A stretch of DNA of 64,000 bases, taken from positions 7,936,001 through 8,000,000 of the forward strand of contig OZ004609.1 in assembly GCA_963924565.1 (NCBI GenBank), written 5' to 3'. The notes beneath the pieces were generated by a model that saw nothing but the letters and a program-made list of their open reading frames with translations, was not told the DNA's origin and made no database searches. Positions 1 through 52,019 of the stretch are shown piece by piece. The first letter of the stretch is position 1, and every line of letters begins with the position of its first letter. Made by a program: the position numbers and the translations under genes. The stretch comes from Ascidiella aspersa. Taxonomy: Eukaryota.

Positions 1-51
1 TGATTAATATAATTATATATGTCCACGGTGCATATAAAAAAATTGGCTTAC

Positions 52-3000
52 CTCATTTTGATCAAATTCCGCGAGAACTTCCTTAAAGTGCATTTTTATA
101 TCGTCTTCTAGCTTTTGTCGAATATCAGTAAACTCCTTTTCTGGTTTTTGATGATTGATGAGTTCGTCGTATTTCTTCAAACTTTTGTTTTCATTAAGCT
201 CGTGTCGTTCTTCCAATTTTTGTCTGTCTGATATTTGAGAGATCTAAACATGTTTGCGATGGTCAGCCGACTAAATTTGCTTATTGTATAATTATGCCCT
301 AAATTTGTTTTCGAAAGATATCTTGTTTTGCTGTTATTTTATATGGACCAAACGTTTATTTTCGGGACATATCGTGTTTTGCCGCTGTTCTCTTTTGGGT
401 AATTTTGATATGTTGCAGAACGATATTAAATAATATGTTTCAGAACGATATAAAAGCAAAGTGTAATGTAAATCATTAAAAAAATTAACCTAGTATATAA
501 CCCTATTTATAATAACCCAATTACTTTCCCCCTACCTCTCCTGACAAAATATACAACAACCGCAATCGCTATCCACTCTAGTTTCAAACACTGTTTTTAG
601 TTTAAAAGATGTGCCATTTCACTATAGGCACATACCAAATACGTGTAAATAGTACAGTGTTTTCTGAAGGTAAAAATAACCTAACCAAGGAACTTAAATG
701 TACGCAAATCATCTTAATTTAATTGGTTATGTATACTACTTACATTTTTTTTCATTTCTTGTTTATATTCGTCAAATGCTTTATTCTTTGCTTTTATGAA
801 CTCGTATCGTGCATTTTCCTATGACAAAATTTCAAAGAAATGTAAAACTTCGTTGGTAGTAAAACTTTGCGAGCAACGTTCATACACGTCCCCATGCTTT
901 TTCTATACCTCTTTAAGCTATAGATTAGCTAAAAAACAACAAGCTTTACACATGTTTTTGCTATACATTAAATCAAGATGAAATGTGGCTTGGTGACATC
1001 CTATATTTAAGCCGATAACGGCTGTTTCGTTGGCATACTTTTACCAAAATTTAAAAATAACATGAACCGCTCGAAAAATGCATGTATTAAGAGTTTTGAG
1101 AAAAATAATCGGATATTAGTATGTTAAACATTATTTTTGTTGAATAAAGCTGCTTTAAGTTCGTAATGAAAAATAAAGATGTTTAGGTGAGGTGAAATAA
1201 TTTACATTTACAGGTTTGCATATACAAAAACAGTGATTTTGAGATTACTTTTAATACATGTTTTTACAAGTTGATTTAGCAAGATTGCAAATTATTCGTA
1301 AGTGTAGTAACCTTTTTTTTATTATTCCGCCCCAAAATAGAACGGAAGTAACTATCAATATCTTCATTGAGGCTTTCACGGATCTCTGTAAATTCCTTGT
1401 TTAACTTCTTTATCTCAACACCGTTAAATTCTTTTTCACTTTTAGACTTGAGTTGCCTATGCCTGTCCTGTAAAATGCTGTCCTCTTCGTAGAATTCAGA
1501 TACCTAAACATGTTTTGTGATCACCGGTAACAGCACAACTAATTAAAGATGCTGTTGCAAAAACAAAAACGATTCCAAAGATTTCCACTGCAACATTTAC
1601 AAATAAAAACACATTAAGGTGCCTTGTTTTAACAAGAAGAAAACAAACAAGGAATGACTGAACAACTCTTAGGAGGTTCTGTGATTTGTGCGACATAAGG
1701 TTATTTTTTGCAATACTGCATTCCTAAATATATTTACCTCGTCATCTTGTTTTTGGCAATATTTATTGTAGACGTTATTCCTTAATTTTTTCCACTCATT
1801 TAGAGCATTCTCCTGCAAGAAATATTTGCAATCATCATTGTAATTCACCAATGTTATACATTTTGAAGTTTACTTTTTATAAGCGACATAATATCGACTC
1901 CAAACTGGTCAGTCGTATAATATTCTAGCACAGCTCAGCTATTTATGGTAACAGAACAACTGTTTAACTAATGTATTCCACATAAAATACAGCAATTTTA
2001 TAGTGCCTATATATAAGTGTTGGGCAACATTAGTCTGAATAAACAATGCGCCACTGTACGAACTCTGGCGGAATTTTAATAATTTGAACTTAGTGATACA
2101 AGTAACTTAATAGACACTTGTTGTTTTTTTACAACTATTGTTTGCAAATGTGTATCTAACAATAGCTCTATATACCTGGAAGAAATTGGGTAAAGCTTTT
2201 GCATGATTTGTGAAAAAAGAAAATTAAGTTAATAAAACGTTTAATTTCGAAGAAGACGTTATGCTCAAGTACACGATCAGTATTGCTAAATTACGTAAAA
2301 ATGGCAATTACCAAGTAACGCTTGAGAATAATTACTTAACGACGCGCTAAGCCTTAATGGTCATAAAAATTATGCAACAAAAAAACTTTTCTAAAAGCTT
2401 TGAATTTTCGTCCAATTAAGAAGCCTAAATATTGTTAATAATACAATAAATATTCAATCCAATTGCACAAAAGGAGTTTCGCAATATGGAATCCTCTTAA
2501 TCTAATTGAAAACAAACGAAACCATATGAGCCTAATAATTTCAATACTTCAAGTAAAACAAACAAAAACACAATATGGTTTTCTGGTGGAAATTTCAACC
2601 TGCCACTCTTTTAATTGATCACGCCCCTGAAAAAAATTGGGTAAAGCAATTGCGGGTTGTCTTCTTTGTTATTTCGACAAAAATATTATTGGTTTACCTT
2701 ATGATCACAATTGCGCTGTTTAACATCATCAAAGTACTCATCAATTTCATTTTCGAGATTTTCACGAATGTTTTGAAAATAATCTTCTGGACGCTTGCTG
2801 GCCTTATCGTCGTAATCTCGTAACGCACGTGTCTTGAATTGTTCGTGCTTTTTTTCCAAACTTTCCGATTCTTGATAGTTTTGAGAATCCTAAATTTTTT
2901 TGAAAATATATGCAAAGTCGCACATACTGATTCAAAGTTACGCATGCGTTAAAATTAATGACGAAACTTTTTTTATATTGACAGTATTTTAGGTAGAATA

Positions 3001-6000
3001 GTACAATCCTAGCAGATGGTATATATAGCTTTGTAGTAGATATAAACAAGCAAACGATTTAGTTCTATCTCAATCCAAACGATTAAGTGCTATCTCAATC
3101 CAATGGGCAACTACGTAATAGTGATAAACACCTGAAAATTTATTTTACATTTTTGTACGATATATGACGATTGAATAATTGTCAATAACGACAAAAAATG
3201 CATTTTTGCAATTTTAAATCTTTTTACATGAAGATCTTTCTTGGGATACTACTTCCTGACATCATTAGTTAACTGTAATCTACCTTGTCGATACTTTTTC
3301 GGTAACGGGCGTAGGCGTCGTTCTTTGCTTTTTCCGACGTGTTTTGAGACTTTTCCTGAAACAATAGATTTGTTAAAAGTTAGGAATACTTTCTTATGTG
3401 CTTTAGCATTAAAGTTCAGTTTACCTCATATCTTATTGAGTTAATGCTATCAAATCATTAAACTCAAAGCTCTTGAAAAAACGTTTGAGTTGCTCTAAAA
3501 AGCATGTTATTCACCCTAACTCAGACAGATATATCGGGAATGATCGAGTAAATTGAACATAGTATTAGAAGTTGTTAAAGGACGTAAACGAAATTTCTAG
3601 TTTAACTGTTACAGCGAGAAACGTCATATGATTTCTATGTAAATGAGCAATACCACTTTACTGTTCTAGGTCGGCAGACTTATGGTGAGTAAACACGAAA
3701 TTCTGACGAGAGTTCCTAACCTAAAATGCGTGTTCATTTTAAATGTATGTGTTACGTCACTTTTACGTCGTGGCGCTCATGATACTGGTCACGTACGGGT
3801 CGACTACTGTATTACACTAAGGGTTTAAATAGGCGCCTGCATCCTTAGAAACTCCGGCATCTAGAAGTTTCGTCACATCTTAATCGGCTTTGCAGTTGCT
3901 ACTTGTACCGGTTGTTGTCGAACAGCCGAGACTATTGGTAGCGATCAACTGCTGTGTCTATTTTAGTGTGTCAGGCTCATCAAGCCGTTAGCTATCGCAT
4001 GCTTGTATGGATTTGACGAAGCGCTTAGTTTATGTGCCTGTCGTCTATAAAACATTTCTTGCTCTAATGTATAATTGCCAGTCGTAAGTCAACGTTGGTC
4101 AGTTGCTTGTTGTAGAAGTACCATCGGTTAAGTATACTAAATTTATTAGCATGTCGTGTTGTGTATAGGTTTAATTTACAAAATAACTATGTAAAATGAT
4201 GTTGATGCATGTAATATATATTTACAAGTATAATTGAGTGGCTTGTGTTTTATTAAGAACATTGAGCAGATTAGTTACGAAGAACAACACGAACTCACGG
4301 CGGTTTATGTCAAACAATAAATAGGCAGAATTAGCTAGTTAAGCTTTTTTGTAGAATTAACTAATATAGGACATAAAGCCGCTACAGTATGCTGTAAATC
4401 TATTTATGTTAATTTTATAATGAAGGGACACCATTTCAAATTAAGGAAGATTTCGTAGCATTAGCACGATTAAATCTAATAAATGTGCCTTGTGATAAAA
4501 GTACTGGTATTGTAAATTGGGATTTATATCTGCAAAATGCAAAGATTTTTTCTCTGTTACTTAAATGAAAAACTTTACTTCCTATTACCTTATTTTTGAT
4601 GTTGTGCTGCTGAACAAACAGAAAGTGCTTATTAATGTCTTCTTTAAGCTTTCGTTGAATCCTTTCAAAATGCTCTTTTGGCTTCTTATTCTCGATGCGA
4701 TTATTATATTCTTGCAATGCTTCAGACTGAAGTCGCTCGTGATCTTCTTTTAAACTTGCTTGACTCCGATAGGTATCACTCTCCTATACCCATTTAATAT
4801 AATCCATTACCTTTGATTTGTGATAAGCACGGTTTTCCATTATAAGTAACTTATAAGGTTTGTTTTTTATGGCCTAAAATAGAAATCAGTCCATGTGAAA
4901 AAATATATAACAATTTGAAAGCTGAACAATCCAAAATAGGAAAATATAATTGAATAAACGTTTAAAATCTCATAAACAACCTCATTGATGTTTCGTTGAT
5001 AGAAAGTGAACGCTTCGCTCCTTGCATTTTCAAAGTCGTTTTGTGCACTTTCCTTCAAGTAGTAAAAAATAAATTTCGTGTTACGTGGACTTGTCGAAGT
5101 AAATAGTTAAGTTAAGTTTGGCCAATAGGCGATAATGCTTGTTTGTGTGTTATGAGGTCGTCAAGGCACCAACTCATTTAACCGTGGAACGTTATTTGTC
5201 CTTGAAATACTTTATACGTTATACAATTTCCCACCGCACGCTGTTCGTTCCATCCTTTTATTTTGACGAACTCGTTGTCGAGAAATTCGTCGAGGTGCGA
5301 TCGACATTCCTGTGCGAAATCTTCACCTCTGTTCTGTACAATCAGTTCTCGCGCTTTGATCTTGTTTAGTTCGTGTTTTTCCTCGAGACGAGATAGTTCG
5401 GTGAAGGTCGAGCCGCAGTCCTGTAAAAAACAAAGAAAAATAAATATTTGGGCCAAACGCCTATTCATCTCAACACCAAATCGATTTGCACCTTGTATCC
5501 CTATATGATTGAATATATATATGCACATATATATTGCAAAATATTCTAAAAATTAAAATTGAAAGTCAAGTATGCTAATCATATAATATAAGGGATTAAG
5601 GAATTTGGTACAACAGTTTTATTTAAGCTGTGGAATGTTTATAAGATGCATGAAACCATTTTCAAGACATGTATTTCGTTATGCTTGATAGCTGAGAAGA
5701 ACTGTAAAACGAGTTTTTAATTTTTTGTTTGTTTATTTTGATGGTGGCAATAACATTGAAAAAATGTGTCCCTTTAGGAAATCGAAGCCAAATAAAGGTC
5801 AGGCAGCGTTGGTAACTTTGCCCGAAAAATACAATATCGATATTTAAAGGAAGATTTAGCTCGAATTTTGCTACTCTTAAAGGCGATAAGGTTTATGTCA
5901 GAAAGATTTTCTTACGCCTTATAAAAAAAACTAAAATGTATTCAATAAATGCTGTATACACACACGCATCAATCGGATGGGAAACTAAACAAAAAGGAAA

Positions 6001-9000
6001 TGAATACCGCTATCTTGACAACAGTAAGTGCTAAACAAACAGGAATATGTTGTACACAAAATGAGCTAACTACCCCATATGTGCTATTTATTGAAATCTT
6101 TTAAACGTGAAATAAGGAACGTACATGGGCCGGTACATATTTTAAATTTGAATTAATATCGGTAATTTTTTCAAAATTGCAAGAAATACCACTGGTATTT
6201 AAAACGATGAATGCGTTCTTAGTCTTACTTGTATCATTTGAGAAATGTAACTATCCTTAGCTCTGTTCATCAACCCCAAAGTCTGGTCTTCAGCTCTTTT
6301 CTGAAAACAAATTGGCTTTTAAATTTAACTGTGAATATCTAAAAATTCCTGATGTACATCAAATATAATGTTTGCAAACGATGAACTATTTAATGTAGAA
6401 TACAATTTATGAGTAACATAAAAACGAATTGCTCTGTTGCCGGAATGTTATTAGCAGTGTTTAAAATATATCCTACAAACCCTAACATGGTTAATAAGTT
6501 TTATACCAACAAATAAACAATTTTTCAGGTTTTGAAAGGCAAGTACGGGCTACTAAATTTGTGTTAGAAGCAATGTTTTAAAAAACTGAAAACGTAAAGA
6601 CATTAACAGTTTTTACAAACTGAAGAATTACGTGCGACCAGCGCCCAAAATTTTTATGTCAAACTATTGAAGTCAATCAAATGGATATCGAAAACCAATA
6701 TATTTACTTTATTAATGTCGTTGGTTTGCTGCATCTTTCGTTTCTCTTCAGCGATTTTTTCCAGGAGGCGTTTTCGCTCTTCCTCTCGCTCTGGATTCCC
6801 TTCGTCGAACTCAGAAGAGTCGTCGAACATTTGCAGTGCGCTTCTCTGCGACGACTCGTGAGTGGCGTTGAAAGCATGATCCTCCAAGAACACGCCCCGG
6901 CATTTCTAAATAACAGCAAAACACTTTTCCAACTTGAAAGTTCAACAAGATAAACGCACTGTATGCTTTTTATTGTTGAATTGTATAGCTGTTGGATAAA
7001 TGAATCATAACCAAATCATCTGGATAAAATGTACAATACGTCACGTCTCTATTATCAAAAGTAGGTAATTTATAATAATCAAATTTTTTCGCCTTAATTA
7101 TTTAGGATTGCTAATAAAATGATAAGATATGTTTTACGAAAGCGACCTGCTTACAAAAATTTAGCGCTCATTCTCTGCTGAACAGTTGCAGGCTAGTGTA
7201 GCAAAACGCTAACAAAGCAAAATTATACATTCTACACTAGGATTTCTCAGGTTTTGACTTCGATTTTTTGCGGGCAAATGAGTTAAAATAAAAGGCGTTT
7301 TATAACACACTATCATTTGCTTTTAATTTCTGTTTTAGTTTAGTAGGCCACTTGTACGATTTTTTTATTTTACTTGCGCATGTGTTTGGGAAAGAGAAAT
7401 TTTCTCAAGGTTAGAGAGTAATTTTCTCAAAAGGAAAGAGAATTTTTCTCATAACGTAAATTTGTGACGTGTTATCTAAAATTTAACTTCCCTTGTCCTT
7501 ACAGCAAACATCCTGAAACCACATTAGTTGGACGACATTCCGACCAAACAGCTGCCAACACGAGTTTACTATCACCTAGAAGACATTAGGCAACATCCTA
7601 CAAAATCCACATTTATATAAATGTCCCCACCTGTTCCATCCTTCCGACGTAAGCAGTGATGCATTTACTTGTTTCTCTTTCTAATCGACGTCGCATTTCA
7701 TCCTAAAAAATATAGCATTGCATTAATGTCACTCTTAAGTAAAAAGGTGGTTGATATGTGTACGCAGGTCCATTAGAGTGCAGATGAGTTCATGTGAATT
7801 TGGTTTTGTGCATGAGTTTGTATGAGAACCTATAAATGCGAGCTCGTGCGTGTGTGTTCTAGCAAAATCGGGGATCATCACAATAAAACGAAACCTGTTA
7901 TTGATTTTTGTTTGTGAGGAAAGTTTAATCATTACCGGATTGCCGTTATAATACCATGACAAAAACAATTGTACCCGTTTAAAGTAACATTCCGTCCGAA
8001 TCTGATTGAGCTGCTGTTTCATGCGTGTGGTCAGCCTGTTCGTAAAATGGTCAACCAGTTCTGCAGGGTAATCTTTGGTCTTTTGGTTGTACAAGCTGAA
8101 TGCGACTTCGCGGCTCTTTTTATCCGCGTCGCGCAAATCTTCTTCATTCATCATTTGGTCACCGATATCCTGTTTATTAAACACATAATCAGGGGGATTG
8201 TAAAAGGTGAAAGGGCATTCGGCAATACCACACAAACTACCTTAACTATTATGGCTTACTTTAACTAATACGTTAGTGCCAAAATATATGGTAGGTATCC
8301 TAGTATTCTTCAGAGTGTTTTGAGAAAATATTTCCAAATGGCGGCTTTCATAGTTTGATAAAAGTCTTTAAATTGAAAATGTAACTTTGCCCAGAATTTT
8401 ATCCAGACTCTACTGCCGTGTGGACTTCGTGAGTAACATTTTCACAATCTATAAACGAAACGCACTCTCTTACCCTTGGTATGAAACTGTTACGTGTTTT
8501 CTGTACAGTAAGCGGTCGCAGGGGGAATAGCCGTCACAAAATCATGTTAATAAAAGCGAGTATTTGGAGACATAATGTGAGAATATTTTGGATACTTAGT
8601 CTGCCACGTGTTTTTATAAAACAAACTTTTTCCTAACTTAAGAAAAATAAACGAAAATATATTTGACTCGTTACATTTCTCTTTACTTGTATCCTATTTG
8701 CTTTTCTCTTTTACTTGTATCCTATTTTTACTGGTTTGCTGGATAATGAGTTTTCCTTAGAGTAATAGTTTTGTGAGGACAACGCCTTATTCCCTAATTT
8801 TCTAAAGCCATATCTAAACACAAACCTTAAGCCATCCATAGAATCAAACATGGTAAATACCAAAAGCTTTTTTGTTGGATTTAACCCAATGTCTCCCTAC
8901 TATATTAGAAGAGCGTCAATGCTACGAAAAGGGCATTTTTTATAACTGGATTCATGGGACATCGAATTTTGAAGCCTATATAGTTATTTATCACTTTTTA

Positions 9001-12000
9001 CTAACAGTTCGAAGATTGGACGAATATTTTTCGGTAGCTTCCTCCACAGCCTCGCTAATGCAAATCTTCATAACATTCTGAAAAAAGCGTTAAAGTATGT
9101 TTTTTTGTATAAAAAGTGTAAAATAAAAAAAGTTAATAATACCGTATAATGTTGCACTGAATATGTGAATAATAGAAATCACCTTGACCCTTGCAAGATA
9201 AATGTCGACCTTAATTCCTGATCATTAACAGCAAAATAATCTAGCAAAGCTAGCAATTCAGGTCAGACACATTAACCAGATCTTAAAAAGATATATATAT
9301 ATTTCGCCAACTAAGGCATCGTCAGTATATCTTAATTCGAATGGAATTAAGATATACTGACGATGCCTTAGTTGGCGAAATATATATATATCTTTTTAAG
9401 ATCTGGTTAATGTGTCTGACCTGAATTGCTAGCTTTGCTAGATTATTTTGCTGTTAATACCGTATAAAGTAAAATCGAAAACTGTGTTTTGATTTTGAAC
9501 AAAGACAATCTCCAAAACTTTACAACTTTGATTGTGATTGAAATATGTTAAAACACTAGCCTACCTGCCGGTGGAAATTTTCAGAATGTAATGACTTGAA
9601 CTCCTGCTTTATAAGTTCAGCCAATTTCTGCTTGTATTTATCCACAATTTCCACAGGACAGTTTTCGGCCTTTTGCTCGTACAACTTAAATGCGGCTTTG
9701 CTGCTCTTGTCATCCGCTTCGGTCAAATCCTTTTCGTTCTTAGCTTCGCTGCCCGCGACCTGTGTTTAAAACAAGCAACAAAGAAGTCTGTATTACCCAA
9801 TCACTAACAATTAAGCTTCTGTTGACTCTATGCTAGCAAATTTAAATCTTCATAAAAATCCTAATAACTGCGCAGTGCGTACATTAATTTAAATGCTGTA
9901 AAATACATATGTTAACTCACTTGTTTCCACACAGATAAATACATTTCCTTAGCTTCCTTCACAGCGTCGTGAGCACGATGTTTGATTACATTCTGTAATA
10001 AAAAAAGAAATTTATTTTTTCATATTGCAGGTTTGTCCTAAATTGAGATATGAAAAAATTGTCCCAAATATTTTGTAAGCTTTTGTGAGTAATTTTTGTG
10101 TTACTGATTTTATAGTATTGACATACGCAGTAGGTTTTCTTTGCTATTTGACTGAAGAAAAACACTCCATTTGGTATTGTCCGTTGGCCAGACAACAAAT
10201 ACTTTAATAGCGTTATTACGCCTGTTTTAAAAGCAGTGTTATTATAGTTTGTTTTCTTCGGCCTGTTTTGTTGTTTTCAAATAAGGTTGGTACATTTATT
10301 ATTATCATATATCCAACCGACGCTGTTTCACTTTAATGTTTTTCGAAAAGCTTAATTCCAACAAAATTCGATCAGAAATTTTTACCCAAAATATAAAATA
10401 AGAGTCGATTTTATTTTTGACTTTTATTTCCATTTTTGAAATACCCTACTTCATAAAATACCTGCTTTATGTAGAGTTGTAGACTAACATTTATGAAAAT
10501 AAGATCGGTTTTAAGAACAAATCGTTAAATAAAAGTTTTAATTTTACGCATTTTTTCTATAGCATTTGTGTAAACAAAGAAAGGGCAGCATGACCTTGTT
10601 TAACGATTGTTTTCATTATTTAAATAGCTGCTGTCACGCTACTAAGTGAAATACATAATAGTTTACCCTTTGATTGATATTTTCCGTCTTAAACATCTTG
10701 AATTCAATTTCTATTCGTTCAGTGAGTTCGATTTTGTGTTTCTGAACGAACTCGTTTTGACAATCTTTGGTGGTTTCCTTAAAATGGCCGAAAGCTTCTT
10801 GGCGGAACTTATCGTCTGCGCCTCCCAAACTCTTTTCGTCTAGAAATTGACCCTTCGAGAACTGTGGAAAGGATTTGTATAAAACATGGCATTATTAATG
10901 AACAAATGATATATGTTTTATATTTATCCTAAACATACACATGAGTTTAAGAAAACAGCTGCAACCAGAAATTTAATAAATTGGTTGCTTCTACAACGAT
11001 TGCCACAATTTTGTTTACTCAGTCTTGCTAGTAACAAATTTTTAGACCAAGAACTATTTCTATTTTATGTCCATATATCAAGTAGTTACTCTTGTTATTG
11101 TCTTTATGGTTAAAACGTGAAACTTAATCTAGTAAATGGAACAATTAAAAGTCGCTGCAAATTTGTTTTTGAACAGGACTACAACAATTTGTTGATTGGT
11201 TTAATTACGACTGAAAACCAAATAGAATTGATTGTGCGAGCATACAGCTATTGTCGTAGATATAAGTTTACAATATTTCGTAACAAAACAATTAATCTTA
11301 AAAATGACCCCGCCTCGATTCAATTCGTGCTTAAATAGTAGAAAATCAAGGTAAATCAATTTCATTGAATTGATTTAACTTGTTAAAAAAAAGTTAGAAT
11401 CAGACTCTTGGGACATATAAAAGAGTACACTTCTCAAAACAATAATAGCAGTACCAGCGCACTTCTTGTGAAAATAATGAAAAAAATAGGAGCAATCAAA
11501 AAAAATATAGTTGGGAGAACGTTTTGTGATCTTTTTGATGTTATTTTAAAACATAAAATAGAAGATGTCATCAAAATAAGCTAAAAACTCATTCAAAAAA
11601 AACCTTTGCATTTACATATAGTTAAGAACAAAAATATTGGTATTCATGAAATAATTTGGATTAAGACGTTATATGTAAAAATCCATACGGTAGTAGGTAT
11701 CATTTTGAACGTTTCGAATAACTCTTTATTTATTTTTAACAATTGCAGAAGTTTTAAAACGTTTAAATTGATATGTAGTTCTGTATGTGTTGTGGTATTC
11801 TTATCACGCTTATGCTACAAAACTTGGATTAAAACTTGTAAGAAATGTGGTTTAGGTGGAGCCAGCGATATACCGGTGCCCAATGTTTATTAATCCCTAA
11901 ATTTGGTTGAAATACACATGTGTTTTAAAAGCGTTTTGTCGTCCCATTGAAGGTGTCACCTCTGACAAATAACATCGCTACAAAATTGCAAACAACCGAC

Positions 12001-15000
12001 TCCAAAATAAGCAAAACATTTTGGTAGTCACGTACTCACATCTTCAAAGCGTGTTTTATACATTTCTGCAGCTTTCACTACCAGCTCGTGAACACGGCTG
12101 TCCATTATGGTCTGAAACAAATTTGGACAATAATTAACGAAAAGCAATGCAGTGTGTGTCGTCTTTGATGGCCCACGCAAATTTTCAGTAAATGTATCTT
12201 ATTTTAGCCCGTGACTATATAAAAGTGTTTTACAAAGTAGTTCGCTAAGATTCATCAGGCCTTAGGACTAAATGCGACACATGTATAACGGATCCTGAAC
12301 CTAAACGATCGCGGAATCATGTTGTTATGTTATGGGGAAAACTTTACTTGCGTGTTACGTTACTTCTTTTTACTTTGTTTACAGGTTTGAAAATGATATT
12401 GCCAAACTAGGTATTAGCCATTTTAATTTTTTAAAGACATTTGAAAACGAAACATGTAATGCTGATTTACCCGAAGATTGTAATTTTTGTGTTCAAAACT
12501 TTGATAATTCATTTGTAGGCGTCCGATCAGCTTGTTTCTACGTTCCATCACAAACTCGTCTGGGCAATCTTTGGTGCAGTTATCGAACAGAGTAAGAGCT
12601 GCTTCGCGGGAGATTTTGTTTGATTCAACTAAACTCTTCTCATCCATTATTTGGTTTTTCTCCAACTGGGATAAAAGCATATTTTTTTATAACAAACAGC
12701 TCAGGATTCCACAACGTTAGAACCACTTGTGATTCGTGTGTGTGACGCATAGTAAACAGTTCAATTAGTCTATTCAGGGGATATAATTCGGGATATATTA
12801 TTTTGTCTTAAAGCGCCTTTGTTTAGTTTTCGTTGTAGGATCAGTTAATCGCACAAGATTGCCATCCATGGTTTTCAGGAATATATGGCACCTATTACGT
12901 ATCCAATAAAAAATAGAATTATTCTTCTTCTCTAAAATGGTGTATAAACATGTTCCCCTTATTTAAGAAGCACCGTTCACGACACGACTATTTTACTGTG
13001 CGCACCATACAGGCGATTCAGTCAGCCGTAGGATGATATAAGTGGGCGTATAAGCTGCAATCAACTCCAACCATTTTTAAATCTCGTTTTGGATTTAATG
13101 CGACTAAAGTTTTACGTTGCTCTTTTCCAAGGTTGGTTATGTTTTCACTGATAGCACTTTAACGAAGTTTAATTTAATAAAGTATAAAACCAGTAGCCTA
13201 TATAGCGGAATTTATAAATAATTACAGATTAGGTTTCCGAGTCTACTCTGGCCATTTTGAATTTCTTGGTAAAATGTTTTTTATTTGTGTTTTTGGTTAT
13301 ATTTTACGCTAAATAAAGTACAATATTTTGTATTAGTGACTTACTTTTTCAAAACCTGATGAATATTTTTTTTCAGCTTCGGCCATAACCTCGTAAACTT
13401 GGTTCTTCTTTTGCTCCTAAAAGAAAAAATTGTGACTATATGTTTAATTTAAATAGTATAATTTTAAGTACGAAATTTCATTTAAAAAAAGTTAAAAAAA
13501 AAAAAAAAAAAAAGTGTAACGAAAACAAGTAAAGTTTTTTCAATGAATTGTATTTAAGTGTAATTTCTCATTGACTAGATGGATAACTAGCACACAGTCA
13601 TGGCAAAAGATTACTCTGCGATTACAAAGTGGCCCAACAAGCGAATTTTATAGCTTACTATTTTCGCAACATTTGTTTGCTTGTGGATAGCAAACAGTTC
13701 TTGGATTCTTTTGGTCAGTTTTTCCTTGAACTCGGCTATAAACACTTGCTCTCCCAGTTTGGGAAGCTCATCAAATTGCCTCAGAGCCACGTATTGACTG
13801 CTTTCGTGTTTTTCTTGAAGGACCGATATATCCAGGAAGCTAACTTGGTCCAAATGCTAAGTCAAGAATGTTGACAGAAGAATAAATAAACTTGACGGAT
13901 AAGCTAGCAACACGTCAATAATTAGAAAAATTAAAAAAATTAAAAAAAAAATTAACAAATACGCTGTTCGATAAACCTTTTCCCTGGTTATTAAGCAAGG
14001 GGAAAACTTCGATTTGCCAAACCTGATGCATTTCTTTTGAATATGTTTCCTCACATCGACGTGAGATGATTTGTATTTCTGCCATTGCACTTGCCTAAAC
14101 AAAACAAAAGTGTTAAACAGAAAATAACTGATGTTTCCAAAAATATACCACACATTGAAAATAACCATTACCTTTTTGAAAGGTCAGCCTGCATACTCAA
14201 ACTTGTTTCATACGGAAGTCATTTGTTTACTTTAACCGTTTAATAGCGTTATGCCGAACGCTGAATACAATAGAGCGCTATTTTAAGCATATTTGAGGCG
14301 CATCATTGTAACTCCGTTAAAACACATAATGTTTGCAATATAAGTAATAGCAGGATTTTTAGTTCGCGCTTTTAGTAATTACAGGACAACACAGGTACCT
14401 CTTCAAACACTGGTGCTTCAAACATTCCAGGGACCTATGGAGAGACACTAAAATAAATACTAAAATATTTTTGTGTAATATCGGTTGTGTTCGAATTGTT
14501 CGTTTGTCGTTTTCGTTGGTCGTTCAAGACCTCAAATATATGTATCCCAAAAATGGTTTCATTTGGTGACCCTGCATACTGTAGCCGATTAAGACCCCCA
14601 AATTATTTGTAACCAGTTAATTTAACGTCTTACCAGCCATGAGTAATAGTACCTGTGATTCAGAGTTATTCAACAGAAGATTACACACAAGAGTACATAC
14701 TTGTAAAATGGTTCCGACTTTGGGCATTTTTCCAGTCCTAAACACCTCGAAGTAAGTTACAATAAATTTGATCAGATCTTTTCCACATAGAATGCTTCCA
14801 TTAACTTCTTTAATGACGATATTTTCGGGTATGAATAAATGATCTACAAGGTCTGGTAATGTTTTCAGAAACTTCGGCTTTACCTCTGTAAAATTTAGAA
14901 TGTTTTAAGTTTGACAAACATTTTTCATCATTAAAAAAATATTTTTTTATTTTAAGAGTTATAATTGAGCAAACTAAATTTTCAGTTTGGCAAAATTTTA

Positions 15001-17237
15001 TTTAAATAGCGAAACTCAAAGTTAACTCTTGTCTTTCAACATAAGTTACACTATATATTGCAATTTACCGTTTAAGTACAAACAGCCTCCCTGACTTTCT
15101 CCTCGTTCGGCAACTTTCGAACCAGGAGGTGGCAACAGAAAGCAGGAAATGTTAGCATAAGAGTTTTTCAGAGTTTTTCTAACTTCTTTTACATCTTTGT
15201 GTTGCATCTTTGTGGCAAGTAATTCGACCAATATTTTACTACCAGCGCTTAAGCCATAACCTGTGTCAGTGTCTTGCCAATCACGCACCAGAAACAGCAA
15301 GTTCTAAAGAAGTTACATGGCTTTTCAAAATTTAGGTGTTAATGAAAAAGTTCAAACCAAAGTGTGTAGGAAAGAACGTACAGAAAAGACACTAGGTATT
15401 ATTTCAAAATGTCAAAACCATTCGCATATTAAGAAAAAACATACCTGGAAAGGATTTCCTGTCAGCTGAGATTTACGCGCTGCTTTTCCGTATTCTGTGA
15501 ACAACTATCGTACAACCGATAGGTTATTCCCGTGATAAGTAAATAAAACTAAATTTGTTTACCTGCAAATGCTGTAATGTGTCTTCCTGTACCTGGTGCA
15601 TGACGTTGTAGATTTGCACGGAACTTATCATCGTGCTTAAAGCGAATATGACTGAACAACCTTCAACCGAAGTAGAACTGTCAAAGGCCCCCTGGGTGTC
15701 CATCAGAAACACGGCTACCTGTGAAATCAAATCGATGGAATGTCAACTGAATCAAATGGATCGAATGTCAACTGAAAGGTTGACCTCAATAGTTTCGAAA
15801 CTGAAGGAATATACTGACATTATACGTCGTCGTAATTAAGTCGAATTTACATTACAAACCTAAAACTTAATTTCCCCGCTGAAATAGTGGTTAAATTAGC
15901 CTGTCATACGCAAACTTTTACAAACACGCTAAGTGTGCAAACAGTTTTACCTTGCCTTGTTCGGTTTTGATGAAGAAGGGTTCGTCCCATATCCATACCC
16001 CCTGCGTGTCGCTTTTTCTTCCACCCCTCCAATTAAAGCCTTCCTTTAACTGCCCTTCTTTGTTATCGAGCCAGTTTTGCGGCTACAATGTAAAGCGATT
16101 GGTGTAAAGTGGATGTAGAACGCGCAATAAATATTGCCTTTATGACCACGGTGTAGCACTGGTTTGCCTTGTTTTTCATCGAAAATTCGATTTTTTCAGC
16201 ATTAATACATTTTGGTCGCTAAAATGGTGAAAATTGAAAGGTCTTTCACCATTGCTATGCAGCCCCAAGCCATTATCGTTGGCCACTTACAGTAGACTTT
16301 TCTTAACTATACAGATATACACATTTAATCACATTAGTAGTTTTTTTTTTCACATGGCGAAACAAAGTTTTGTGGTTTTTAAGTGAATAAATAATATTGT
16401 TACGATGTTACATACTGTATGTGGGTTACTGGGAAACATTTTTCAAAGCGGGGGTTAAGAATAACAAATCTGTCATATTTAATTATAAATATTGGGTAAC
16501 GACTATCAACGATATTTTGCATTACTAACCTGTCCTTTCTTCTGATACCACAGGTAGCGAAGAAAAAAATTCAGCATGAATGATTTTCCTTTGCGGAATG
16601 CGCCAGCTAATGAATACACAGCAACTGGGATGTTGGCAACTTGTTTAAACACCCGCTTTAGCTCGTCTGAGTTTATTTCGAAAGAACCATCGTCATTTGG
16701 TCGAACAATTTGCACAGCCTTGTGGGGTTCTGTGTTTTCATTGCCTGCTCGAAGGATAGGTTAGCAAGCTCTACTCAAAAAATAATTGAATCTAAGTGAG
16801 GCATAATAAAATTTTTGAACATCTGCGAGTGGGGAGCAAAATGTGTCATGTTCTAAACAATAGAATATTTTGTTGATTACATTATTTGTTTCATTCTCAA
16901 TCTAGAAAAAAAGACAAAACTTATTGCTAAAAGCGTAAAGTCAAAACTTATTGCTAAAAGCACTCCTCACAAAAAAACATTAGCATTTTATTTTGTCGCC
17001 GTCGTAGATTTTTACGGAACTTATTGCAGCAGATCCGATGTCCATGGTCAGCGTTGGCTGTTTCGCATTTTAATACACTTTATGTAGCATTGTTTTGAAG
17101 TACAAAAGGAAATCTCAATTTTATAAAAATTGTCTCATTATTTTATTTTACTTACCGCTTTTATTTTCGGCGTATGCCATAGACGATGTGCAATCACTTT
17201 CCGACGAATATTCTTCACATTCTGACGTTTCAGACAT
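52..17237 (-). CDS. Giant atlastin/GBP-family GTPase with at least 11 tandem three-helix-bundle repeats (3' end beyond window edge)
   Basis: GTPase exons: 17237-17156, 16744-16530 (G1 [10 protein letters not shown]), 16082-15951 ([18 protein letters not shown]2 Thr), 15718-15563 (G3 LMDTQG; [15 protein letters not shown]), 15504-15445 (LFTEYG), 15303-15069 (G4 LFLVRDW; CFLLPPPG), 14885-14701. Then 11 exon pairs: 14094-14023+13856-13659, 13416-13345+12665-12471, 12111-12040+10861-10667, 9992-9921+9759-9565, 9077-9006+8169-7975, 7702-7631+6905-6708, 6300-6229+5420-5235, 5052-4981+4783-4589, 3355-3284+2889-2698, 1812-1738+1503-1312, 818-744+243-52. All are GT-AG, in frame and stop-free; the last visible exon ends in a GT donor. 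Confidence 0.92.
9150..9454. mobile_element. Truncated Penelope-like retroelement insertion (inverted pseudo-LTR)
   Basis: Flanked by 13-bp direct repeat TAATACCGTATAA (9137-9149 and 9455-9467). An inverted duplication plus minimal hammerhead is typical of PLE insertions. No RT or GIY-YIG ORF is present. Confidence 0.6.
9224..9458. repeat. Perfect inverted repeat (115-bp arms, 5-nt loop) in an intron of the atlastin-like gene
   Basis: 9224-9338 is the exact reverse complement of 9344-9458; loop GAATG at 9339-9343. Confidence 0.97.
9349..9394 (+). ncRNA. Minimal type I hammerhead ribozyme motif (mirror copy on minus strand at 9288-9333)
   Basis: AAGATATA-CTGACGA-T-GCC(TTAGTT)GGC-GAAA-TATA-TA-TATATCTT: 8-bp helix I, CUGANGA core, 3-bp helix II, GAAA, 1-bp helix III capped by palindromic UAUA, UH cleavage site. 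Confidence 0.8.
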
Positions 17238-17895
17238 GGTTAAATCAATTGAATGATCAATAAAGCTAAACACATTATTTACATGAAAACTAATAAATAT
17301 CTTATTTAAACATCATATGTTGCTTGGTTATTTTATTCCAATGGGCCGTAAATCCAAAGGCCCGTATTTATCCCAATGGGCCGTTAACATTGGTACAAAT
17401 CTCATTCATTCCCTTCAGGTTGCAATTTAATTTAATATTTTTGTGGGACACCAAAAGTGAAGTCTCGTGCTTCTAATTGAAACGCGAACGCTCGATGAAA
17501 CCCCCATTGCGAGGGCCAAATGTAATGATTCCTCGCAGCAATGTTTGTTCCCTTTGTTCACTAATGTCTCCATACATAATTCTATACTTTGTCTTACTCT
17601 GAAAATGTCATTAATTGGAAATCGTAACCATTTTTACAGTAATAAAAATTAATTGCAACATATATTTTCCCTGTTTTTATAAACTAATATATGCTTCGCC
17701 ATTTTGCTTATAGTAATAGACAAGTCATCTCTATACGAAGCCTATACATGTTCCTTTCATTTTGTACTCTTCCCAGAAGAAGTTCTCACCAATTGGCGGC
17801 AAATCGTCTAGTCGTTGTTATAAAAAGGGCAATTGCGAAAACAGGTTTGGGCTTGTCTCAGGTGGTCCTTCTTCTTTTCGTTAAAAAATCTCAAT

Positions 17896-49014: not shown

Positions 49015-51817
49015 TTACAGACCGTTATAAAGTGGCATACAGACTGGACTTGCAGCGTGTGCACCAGCATCTTGAAGTACACCACCTGGTGAGCAACGCC
49101 AGGGGTCCCATGTAGCTTTCTGCCAGTCGTACAGCAACTGGTGAAGCTGACCAAATGCTGCCGAATTATTTTTGTCGTACGCAATGTTATTTTTTTGTAA
49201 AGGGTCACTTGTCATGTTATACATTTCAAACTGACTACGGTAATAGTAAGCCTTCAATGTTTTAAACCAGTGCAGATCTTCACCTGCTCGAGTTCGATTG
49301 AGCAAATCTTGGAAAGAAGGAGCTAGATAGAAATCCTGATCAATTGGAAATGGCATAAGGTTGTTCAGGTTTTCAATCAAAGTTAAGTTGACAACTCGAA
49401 CTGATCTCATTGGGTAATACATAGTGATTTCATGTAAGGAATGACTGCCAAATACAGTATTTCTCTGTGTGTCTTTTAAAAGCGACTTTCCAGTCAACTC
49501 TACCTTTCTGTTGAATAGTTTGTATTGTGGATATTCCAATGCAAACCAATCCAAAATGGTCGGTGTGACATCTAACAGGGACATGTAATCATGTGATATT
49601 TTACCCCAACTAGGTTTATCATAAGGGGAAGACAGAAAAAAAGGTTCAGTAGTTCCTGAAGCATACAAATTAGTCCTTCCATTTGGAAATGGAATACCGT
49701 TGTCAGATGTAAAGATAATCAAAGTGTCATCAAGAAAACCAGAATTCTTCAATGCTTTCATAATCAAACCAACCCCTTGGTCCAGTCTTGATATGGTTGT
49801 ATATTGTACGGCAATATCTTCACGAGATGCAGGAGTATCCTGAACAAAATCTGGCACAATAACCTCATTTGGGTCATAGTATTCTGGCATCCAGTCAGGG
49901 ATGTCACCCATTCCTTCTTTACGATTTCCAAATTTCTCGCAGAAGGCCCCATATTGTGGGTGAGTGTGTCCACACCTATGTGGGTCATGAAACCCAATGT
50001 AAAGAAGAAAAGGCTGGCTTGAATTCTGGCCAGAGAAAAACTTTTCTGCCAATTGCTTGATGTGCGTAATGTTGCGACCGACTTGTAGAATTGAGTTGTT
50101 TTCTTCTGTTTCGGCAAAGTCAAACGGGTAAACTTGTTCCGGTCCAACATGCTTTTTTCCAATAATTCCAGTCCGAATTCCACCTTGCTTTAGAATGAGC
50201 GACAAACTTTGAACATTCTCAAATGAATTGAAGTGGTGGTAGCCATTGTGCAGTCCAAACATCCCTATAAAAATAGCTAATTAGTATTGCTTGTTGGTCG
50301 ATAAATTCTTTCTTAACATTAAAACTGGCTTTGAATATATACAAGATGTTGGACAACTAACACTAGAAAAATTAGTTGCGTTTCTTATGTAAAATTAAAT
50401 CTATGTTACTCGCTTTTATACTAAACAACAGTGCTGTGAACAAGATACTACTGAAATTATTATAAGTCCGAGTGAAGTCATTAGCATTCAAATTGAATGT
50501 TAAACTACGCAAATCTATAAAGTGATCTTAGCCATAAAACTATTTTAAATATTAAACAACAGTGCAGCCTAATGCAAGTAAACTGTTTTACATGAAAAAA
50601 ACGTAATGACTAAATTTTATAAAAAAATACATAAAGCAAAAGCCTCTAGAGCAGTGGTTCTCAATCTTTTTGTACCCGTGGCCCCTTTTTGAACCTTTCA
50701 AATGGTCGCAGACCCCTTACATTTTTCTCGTGGAATATCTGCGTTTATAGTTATTTTTAATAATTCAGTATATCTGCCTATAGTGTACCTATGTTGAATA
50801 AATTAACAGACAACACCAAATTACTTTATAACACGTCTATTTTAAAGTGATTTCTGCTGCTGCATCTCCAAGGCAGTCTTTTAATGCGTGGTTGTGTTTT
50901 CGATAATGCTACAATAGATAAACGCATGTTATCTTTTCCAAATCCAGTACATGGAAACTGTAATAATCCTCCCATTCATTTAACAATCTATTAGTGTTAA
51001 ATTACAATGGAGGTGTTATGTCATACTCAATGCGATTTGTTATGTCATAATGCGATTCACAGCATTTTTACAGTGTGATTTTATCACTTACCAAAATTGT
51101 GATTAGGCATGTATCCCAGCGTTAATTATTTTATTAAAGGTATATTTAGAAGTTTTTGCGGACCCTCTGAAAACGTTTTGCGGCCCCCCAGGGGTCCGCA
51201 TACAGGTCCCCGGTTGAGAACCACTGCTCTAGAGGCAAGCCTTCATCATTTAAGTTGAAGTTAATAAATGGACCTAAGTTGAGTTACATAATTTTGTTCA
51301 TAATGGAGACAAGGACATAGCATTCTGTGGCAGGTGCACGCCCGTTATTTTACTGAAAAATTTGTGTGAACATGTGAATTGGTATATATCGCACTTAAAC
51401 TCTGTATAAAAGCTAATTTCCAGCCTAAGATGTACAAAAACCAAGATTACGCAAATGCACACCTGCACACCGCAGTTGGTGCTACACACCTGAAATCTCG
51501 ACGTGAAGTGCCACAGAATGCTGACTGGCCAGCAAGTACTAACCATTTTGATGCTGAGGTAATCCAGTTAAGATTTGAGAACGACTTGGCGAGCAGCTGC
51601 TTACTGTGGTGAAGGCCTTTGTGTAGATTTTCGAACGTTCAGCCAGCGCCGAAATATGCGGGGTTTTAATCACATTATTGCCGTACGTGTTTAATTCGAA
51701 GCCCATGTCATCGGCAAGTAATACCAAAACATTTTGCGCTAGCGACAAAGTAGTCTCGCCCACTATAATAAGGCTAGTGAGTAAAAGCGCATATAGGCCT
51801 AGCTTGAAAACGTACAT
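49015..51817 (-). CDS. SGSH: N-sulphoglucosamine sulphohydrolase (sulfamidase), 2 coding exons, ~507 aa
   Basis: Exon 51817-51544: signal peptide, NVLVLLADD, sulfatase motif [17 protein letters not shown]. Exon 50264-49015: [39 protein letters not shown]. Confidence 0.96.
50652..51226 (+). mobile_element. hAT MITE in the SGSH intron
   Basis: TIRs CAGTGGTTCTCAATC / GGTTGAGAACCACTG; perfect TSD CTCTAGAG. Confidence 0.93.
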
Positions 51818-52019
51818 TTGGTCGGTACAAACTTTTGAAAGTGTAAAATTGTTAACAAAACTAGCGTGTGTTTTTAACTTTGACAACTTTCTCTAGCGTG
51901 AAGTTGATCTATGGATGGAGCAGCACGGCGAATAGTAACTATTGGAGCGTGACCTTTAGGCGGCGCTTTGTGGGAGAAACTATTTTCGATAATTCAGTAT
52001 ACCATATCATGACATAAAA

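Follow-up and report, generated by a model that had tools for sequence, protein, structure and literature searches.

A 64,000-nucleotide (nt) stretch of the genome of the ascidian Ascidiella aspersa (assembly GCA_963924565.1, 308.6 Mb in 75 contigs; contig OZ004609.1, positions 7,936,001 to 8,000,000, in our numbering G000:C3:7936001-8000000), to which we refer as the window, carries on its minus strand a gene for a large GTPase whose head resembles that of atlastins and whose stalk is predicted to consist of twelve consecutive helical bundles. The GC content is about 34%. The gene model, which was built from stop-free segments, two small profiles of obvious copies and the inspection of splice sites, comprises 31 exons with canonical AG/GT borders and 1,443 codons ending in TAA. 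The first seven exons encode the head and the following 24 alternate strictly between a short type, termed A (24-25 codons), and a long type, termed B (62-66 codons), with each A-B pair constituting one repeat unit. All 22 cassette exons located in the window show a pyrimidine-rich AG acceptor, a GT donor and phase 0, and together they form 11 units of 86-90 amino acids (aa) each. The twelfth unit and the stop codon were located in the adjoining DNA, 0.8-3.8 kb beyond the window edge. The last exon, B12, has a B-like start, no GT donor at the usual place and 24 further codons leading to TAA, and unit 12 amounts to 111 aa including this tail. The features of the gene are listed below, with negative window positions lying beyond the edge, in the adjoining segment L003.

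17156-17237, minus strand: exon 1, with the ATG at 17237, an acidic N-terminus and a phase-1 donor (AGCG/GTAAGT)
16530-16744, minus strand: P-loop exon with GAFRKGKS (G1 and arginine finger); Pfam GBP expectation value (E) 3.6e-9, Atlastin-1 residues 35-96 E 5.8e-11
15951-16082, minus strand: exon with the G2/switch 1 threonine, WRGG...SDTQG; Pfam GBP E 3.8e-6 and splice sites
15563-15718, minus strand: G3/switch 2 exon with DTQG; Pfam GBP E 1.6e-18, Drosophila atlastin residues 115-166 E 3.2e-17
15445-15504, minus strand: 20-aa exon of the G domain, placed by splice sites and open frame
15069-15303, minus strand: G4 exon with the RD motif (LVRDW) and a phase-1 donor; Pfam GBP E 2.2e-7, Atlastin-1 residues 213-282 E 2.3e-12
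14701-14885, minus strand: final exon of the G domain, ending in the linker to the first bundle, placed by splice sites
13659-14094, minus strand: unit 1, A1 14023-14094 (24 aa) and B1 13659-13856 (66 aa), at the position of the single three-helix bundle of atlastins
12471-13416, minus strand: unit 2, A2 13345-13416 and B2 12471-12665
10667-12111, minus strand: unit 3, A3 12040-12111 and B3 10667-10861
9565-9992, minus strand: unit 4, A4 9921-9992 and B4 9565-9759
7975-9077, minus strand: unit 5, A5 9006-9077 and B5 7975-8169
6708-7702, minus strand: unit 6, A6 7631-7702 and B6 6708-6905
5235-6300, minus strand: unit 7, A7 6229-6300 and B7 5235-5420
4589-5052, minus strand: unit 8, A8 4981-5052 and B8 4589-4783
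2698-3355, minus strand: unit 9, A9 3284-3355 and B9 2698-2889
1312-1812, minus strand: unit 10, A10 1738-1812 and B10 1312-1503
52-818, minus strand: unit 11, A11 744-818 and B11 52-243
-768 to -839 (L003:9161-9232), minus strand: exon A12, outside the window
-3536 to -3796 (L003:6204-6464), minus strand: last exon B12, 87 aa with the stop codon TAA and the tail GWFKKIKHRLFSLPQLRLHTVSNS

The true start of the protein could also be the second in-frame methionine at codon 20. The hexamers AATAAA and ATTAAA found about 370-520 nt 3' of the stop codon are uninformative at this GC content, and a search of window positions 1-17400 against Rfam at gathering score, a threshold that may be missed by minimal hammerhead ribozymes, gave no family match. 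A first-pass annotation of the window had delimited the gene by positions 52 and 17237, and splice inspection finds both ends to be exact, the latter being the ATG and the former the 3' border of exon B11. The 355-aa head with intact motifs that it had described corresponds to seven exons (window 17237-14701), which span 1,065 nt and 355 codons without a stop, and its estimate of about 980 aa of repeats of about 89 aa, in at least 11 copies, agrees with the 977 aa contained in the 11 units of the window, to which unit 12 is added outside.

The head carries the sequences GAFRKGKS (P-loop with its arginine), SDTQG (the threonine of G2), DTQG (G3) and LVRDW (the RD of G4). In atlastins and GBPs, the arginine of the P-loop serves dimer-dependent GTP hydrolysis. 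As in all database searches of this study, the head was compared exon by exon, with joined exons being used only for length and stop counts and for codon comparisons. Four of the head exons pass the Pfam cut-off for GBP, the only family found in a Pfam scan of the G-domain exons, in which no RHD3-type/Sey1p match was obtained. Three head exons, when compared to the sequences of solved structures, retrieve atlastin-1, atlastin-3 and Drosophila atlastin (E 1e-10 to 3e-17), with RNF112 (E 2e-5) as sole match outside the atlastins and no GBP among the matches of these three exons. With all exons combined, the identity of the head amounts to 46% with the canonical-type atlastin P0023 and to 36-43% with the multi-unit relatives described below. 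These comparisons identify the head as an atlastin-type G domain that has kept all catalytic motifs, and for which GTPase activity is predicted.

The identity of the repeats was addressed with a profile of the eleven B exons of the window, which was run against the sequences of all solved structures. This profile matches Drosophila atlastin (residues 356-414, E 2e-5), ATL3 (residues 358-412, E 7e-5) and ATL1 (residues 385-440, E 8e-4), in each case in the region of helices 2 and 3 of the atlastin bundle, and nothing but atlastin middle domains was found below E 0.05. The B exons are mutually 15-42% identical and, as judged from their sequences, the repeat units are old duplicates. Since the units share so little of their sequence, yet are all open and give rise to a profile that is specific for atlastin middle domains, they are real far beyond chance. 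On these matches, each of the twelve tandem units is identified as a homologue of the three-helix bundle that forms the middle domain of atlastins, in line with the first-pass annotation, which had described the repeats as tandem three-helix bundles. Exon A contains an invariant tyrosine and is found in unit 1 at the place of helix 1. A profile of this exon, which at 24 aa is too short a query, does not retrieve atlastins among solved structures (best match ribosomal protein uL3, E 0.56), and exon A is assigned as helix 1 because of its position and the fold seen in relatives.

Structure prediction is consistent with this assignment. Exon B1, when folded with the other ten B exons of the window as alignment, is predicted to form a helix at residues 10-30 (21 aa), a two-residue turn and a second helix at residues 33-65 (33 aa), with a predicted local distance difference test (pLDDT) score of 81. 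As a proxy for the entire rod, we used an AlphaFold model of the 1,101-aa homologue P0044 from Styela clava, which was aligned with seven paralogs. In the stalk of this protein (residues 320-1060), helices of 53-63 aa alternate with helices of 20-27 aa at a pLDDT of 80-90, and the best structural matches of the model are atlastin-1 and atlastin-3 (28% identity), followed by RNF112 and then by GBPs (14-18%). The sum of helix 3 (33 residues) and exon A (24 residues) amounts to 57 residues and fits the long helices of P0044 and a spectrin-like arrangement with a continuous helix. We thus infer from these models that helix 3 of each unit would run on as helix 1 of the next and that, with about 5 nm per unit, helix lengths would bring a rod of twelve units to about 55-60 nm. 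An atlastin head on an anchorless rod of twelve bundles is, at the level of sequence, well supported.

The extension beyond the window edge, which had been proposed by the first-pass annotation, reaches the C-terminus of the protein and reveals neither a hairpin nor a CaaX box, and a tail that is basic. The transmembrane hairpin, which that annotation had found missing as far as the edge, is absent up to the stop codon, with a highest Kyte-Doolittle mean of 0.29 in a window of 19 residues over all 24 stalk exons, and inspection of the adjoining DNA located no hydrophobic exon between the final unit and the stop. The protein ends in ...HTVSNS. When searching 8 kb downstream for an alternative last exon encoding a CaaX box, we encountered only chance C-xxx ends, none of which is on a cassette-like exon. 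The GBP_C domain (PF02841) was detected neither on the final G-domain exon nor on units 1-3 at E <= 1, nor anywhere in the genome at E <= 0.001, the latter in a weak, exon-wise search. The tail (GWFKKIKHRLFSLPQ) contains 24 aa with a net charge of +5 and a hydrophobic moment of 0.47. The last exon is preserved in a paralog as an open frame of 89 codons, where the tail, which begins with GWFKKIKHRLFS in the gene described here, begins with GWLKRINHRLLS, with 8 of 12 positions identical and the remainder diverging.

The gene is part of a family that has expanded in this genome. About 13 kb downstream begins a tandem copy, behind which a further, partial copy is located. The 31 paralogous exon copies are free of stop codons and retain all AG/GT borders, and the sole exon indel comprises 3 nt. 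The exons of the paralog are 93-100% identical, with one exon of the tandem copy at only 80.6%, and none of the 77 exon substitutions introduces a stop or a frameshift, whereas introns are 85-97% identical to those of the copies and contain many gaps. The ratio of nonsynonymous to synonymous substitution rates (dN/dS, Nei-Gojobori) is 0.38 for the head, and for the stalk 0.65 in comparison to copy 2 and 1.12 in comparison to copy 3. A frame that is free of stops at such ratios in the stalk suggests that the frame is protected, while the sequence of the stalk is free or pushed to change.

In the tandem paralog (L004-L007, G000:C3:7886001-7926000; window -13100 to -42400, minus strand), the G domain is intact and units 1-9 are present. 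Unit 10 has been lost, and the copy continues with units 6-12 for a second time, closed by a last exon of their own. It could thus encode up to 16-17 cassettes if all were spliced. The frame of exon 1 in this paralog is interrupted by TAA after codon 12, and an ATG further on is intact. An isolated open frame located between the two atlastin-like genes (L003:1523-1693, window -8307 to -8477, minus strand; VLSDGKVVELDSPHNLL) is similar to the C-terminus of ABCC-type transporters and is possibly fragmentary. An inverted partial copy of the final units and the last exon, of about 90% identity, is found at G000:C3:7846377-7854924 (plus strand) with no G domain nearby, and could be either a fragment of a gene or the end of a plus-strand family member of great length that starts near 7794457. 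In the window itself, two long open frames on the minus strand (49015-50262 and 51539-51886) have by eye the appearance of a sulfatase of the N-sulfoglucosamine sulfohydrolase type and constitute an unrelated neighbour.

In the entire genome, at least 50 loci contain a G3 exon of the GBP type, with clusters on C3, C6, C1 and C2. Exons of type B occur only at C3:7.66-7.95 Mb, at C1:34.27-34.40 Mb and in one intronless locus on C2. Neighbouring genes contain about 5-6 units, and the gene with twelve units is the longest intact one that we have seen. The intronless locus (G000:C2:4449162-4450352, plus strand) is an open reading frame of 539 codons, in which the GBP G-domain profile is matched over its entire length (291 bits) and a single B-type bundle is present. 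It probably encodes the genome's canonical atlastin, in contrast to the intron-rich expanded family.

In a search of 1.84 billion proteins, the repeat profile obtained 33 matches only. The protein with most units is P0003 (XP_039260676) from Styela clava with 1,571 aa and 11 matched stretches, while P0022, P0002, P0014 and P0001 contain fewer. In P0001-P0004, P0014 and P0022, which carry 2-11 stretches each, the heads match Pfam GBP. Proteins termed 'atlastin-like' from tephritid flies (Bactrocera, Ceratitis), a mealybug (Planococcus) and a barnacle (Amphibalanus) contain 2-4 stretches, and proteins from Clavelina and Ciona savignyi are also among the matches. The head of P0003, when used as query, retrieves uncharacterised models from Styela clava of 1,023-1,784 aa, including LOC120335724 (1,784 aa) and LOC120336941 (1,101 aa). 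No match is from Ascidiella aspersa, and the gene is thus absent from the protein collections searched. The C-termini of the relatives vary: P0003, P0002 and P0022 end in a transmembrane tail anchor, P0014 in a CaaX box (CTIL) and P0044 in an amphipathic basic tail. The occurrence of CaaX boxes in some relatives and tail anchors in others suggests that the membrane anchor of the family was repeatedly replaced. The protein with the CTIL box is from Amphibalanus amphitrite and has 641 aa, and in Styela the tail anchor of P0003 and P0045 is a single helix.

The classification as lineage-specific long-stalk GTPase of the dynamin superfamily, which had been assigned before any database search, is upheld by the match of both head and repeats to atlastins, with the protein belonging to the atlastin/GBP branch. 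The accompanying suggestion that the architecture was undescribed is not supported, since the same build is found in RefSeq models of Styela clava of 1,000-1,784 aa and in proteins of insects and a barnacle with 3-5 units, and a hairpin-less atlastin paralog, BmAtlastin-n, has been published as an antiviral factor (PMC4926086). The gene described here is an unusually long version of an architecture with precedents in RefSeq. In full-text searches of the literature, we found no account of atlastins with tandem three-helix bundles. BmAtlastin-n from Bombyx mori is a cytoplasmic protein of 770 aa with a head of the atlastin clade, a middle part described as 'coiled-coil' and no transmembrane segment, which restricts Bombyx mori nucleopolyhedrovirus (BmNPV; PMC4926086) and also microsporidia. 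The same study found no GBPs in Ciona (PMC4926086), and a review, which also covers the antiviral paralog, raises the question whether atlastins would take over the roles of GBPs in invertebrates that lack them (PMC9005921). With P0022 as query, no homologue from Bombyx was contained in the best 120 matches.

Canonical atlastins are fusogens of the endoplasmic reticulum (ER) that contain a single bundle and a hairpin in the membrane, whereas GBPs are immune proteins that form coats. The protein described here shares with canonical atlastins (ATL1-3 and the Drosophila protein) the motifs of the G domain and a three-helix bundle that follows straight after it, with unit 1 in the canonical position, and differs from them by its twelve bundles instead of one and by the lack of the two-helix hairpin and of a long cytoplasmic tail. 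With BmAtlastin-n it has in common, by the published description of that protein, a G domain of the atlastin clade, a long helical middle part and the absence of transmembrane segments. BmAtlastin-n, for which the only functional data on such proteins exist, is shorter with 770 as opposed to 1,443 aa and belongs to the insect lineage, whose expansion was probably independent of the one in ascidians. The multi-unit atlastin-like proteins in RefSeq resemble it in their atlastin-type head followed by serial units, of which there are 2-11 in these proteins and 12 here. Those from Styela are distinguished by a GBP-like P-loop (YRTGKS), by G domains of 36-43% identity and by different C-termini. GBPs, including hGBP1 and its kin, show dimer-stimulated GTP hydrolysis, carry a lipid or basic anchor at the C-terminus and are encoded in tandem clusters of immune genes. 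They constitute a sister branch and are similar in being soluble, in their long helical stalk and in their fast-evolving tandem clusters. Unlike in GBPs, there is no GBP_C domain on the exons tested and no CaaX box, and a single bundle was duplicated in place of the combination of a middle domain with α12/13. The stalk of Sey1p consists of several three-helix bundles, with Sey1p and RHD3 both being membrane-anchored fusogens, and the rods of the spectrin family are built of serial three-helix bundles that are joined by continuous helices and carry no GTPase head. In both cases the likeness is one of geometry and by analogy only, and no relationship in sequence was found, with the Pfam scan returning GBP alone.

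In light of these properties, we consider it reasonably probable that the gene is intact and encodes a large GTPase of atlastin origin, in which a very long helical rod has replaced the membrane hairpin and for which defence is the likeliest role. In the mechanism that we propose, the hairpin of atlastins would have been exchanged for a long rod of serial bundles, GTP-driven pairing of G domains head-to-head would join two such rods and the basic tails would attach to a membrane or some other polyanionic surface. The outcome would be the crosslinking over long range or the coating of a target and not the fusion of the ER. A family that duplicates in tandem, has a fast-evolving stalk and varies in the number of its cassettes and in its C-terminal anchors makes cell-autonomous defence the most likely role, which we hypothesize by analogy to vertebrate GBPs and BmAtlastin-n. 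With units numbering 12 in this gene, 5-6 in its neighbours and perhaps 16-17 in the adjacent copy, the protein might act as a GTP-gated molecular ruler, with a head that dimerises upon GTP binding and a spectrin-like reach of about 55-60 nm, whose length would be tuned in steps of whole bundles by phase-0 cassettes in evolution and perhaps also by splicing. Such a ruler would amount to a GBP-like system for coating pathogens or for tethering over long range, rebuilt from an atlastin by sea squirts, in which the GBP-type helical domain (PF02841) was not detected, an extension of our proposal that we advance tentatively and consider possible rather than probable.

Several observations weigh against this interpretation. 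We infer only from splice sites and from relatives that all twelve units are contained in a single transcript, all 24 cassette exons are in phase 0/0 and isoforms X1 and X3 of a Styela protein differ by exactly 190 aa, or about two units. The P0044 model serving as proxy for the rod is from a protein whose G domain shares only about 36% identity with that of the present gene, and it was obtained from a shallow alignment with a predicted template modelling (pTM) score of 0.35 and a poorly modelled head. The tail is only moderately amphipathic, with its hydrophobic moment being unremarkable compared to the rest of the protein, and a dN/dS near 1 in the stalk also fits relaxed constraint.

The phase of the cassettes and the isoforms of Styela also speak for a different view, in which the twelve units would serve as a menu from which alternative splicing selects subsets, at the extreme a single unit, resulting in shorter and variable proteins. 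As all cassettes are in phase 0/0, any subset of them could be skipped in frame, and the clean block of 190 aa by which the RefSeq isoforms of Styela differ shows that relatives are at least predicted to skip cassettes. Similarly, the isoforms in Bactrocera range from 593 to 817 aa. Against such a menu, annotated relatives contain up to 11 units in series, the units are of low identity and are each a strict pair of A followed by B, mutually exclusive exon pairs would be unusual, and the final unit departs from the others in lacking a donor and carrying an additional tail. We expect that some skipping of cassettes is likely and that strict exclusivity is unlikely, and we regard the menu as a whole as an improbable account of the gene.

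Somewhat more doubtful still is a housekeeping function, in which the protein would act as structural or tethering component, such as a spacer on organelles or the cytoskeleton with an atlastin head, with no role in immunity. This proposal would agree with the G domain being nearest to canonical atlastin, as reflected in the identity to P0023, and with spectrin-like rods being typical of scaffolds. Conversely, tandem clusters with dozens of paralogs that vary in cassettes and anchors and show a dN/dS of 0.65-1.1 in the stalk are rare among housekeeping genes, and the separate intronless canonical atlastin on C2 is available for a role in the ER. A further alternative, that the locus is an untranscribed or decaying copy and thus a young pseudogene in a duplicating cluster, finds a precedent in the neighbouring copy, which decays, as seen in the stop after codon 12, the loss of unit 10 and the exon of 80.6% identity. 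We assign very little weight to this possibility, since in the gene itself 31 of 31 exons are open, splice sites and GTPase motifs are intact and the exons have accumulated their 77 substitutions without stop or frameshift, whereas the introns show many indels.

The gene illustrates the reach of the atlastin scaffold, in which the hairpin was dropped and the bundle multiplied twelve-fold by the duplication of exon cassettes. In its genomic features, the family has the hallmarks of genes for host defence, and it is found in a genome in which the GBP-type helical domain was not detected by our weak, exon-wise search. If both the rod and the role in defence hold true, the family would offer a natural series of lengths (5-6, 12 and perhaps 16-17 units) that relates the length of a stalk to its working distance, and it would be a candidate answer to the question whether atlastins have assumed the functions of GBPs in invertebrates that lack them (PMC9005921). 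It would also provide a clean case of the evolution of protein length by symmetric exon cassettes.

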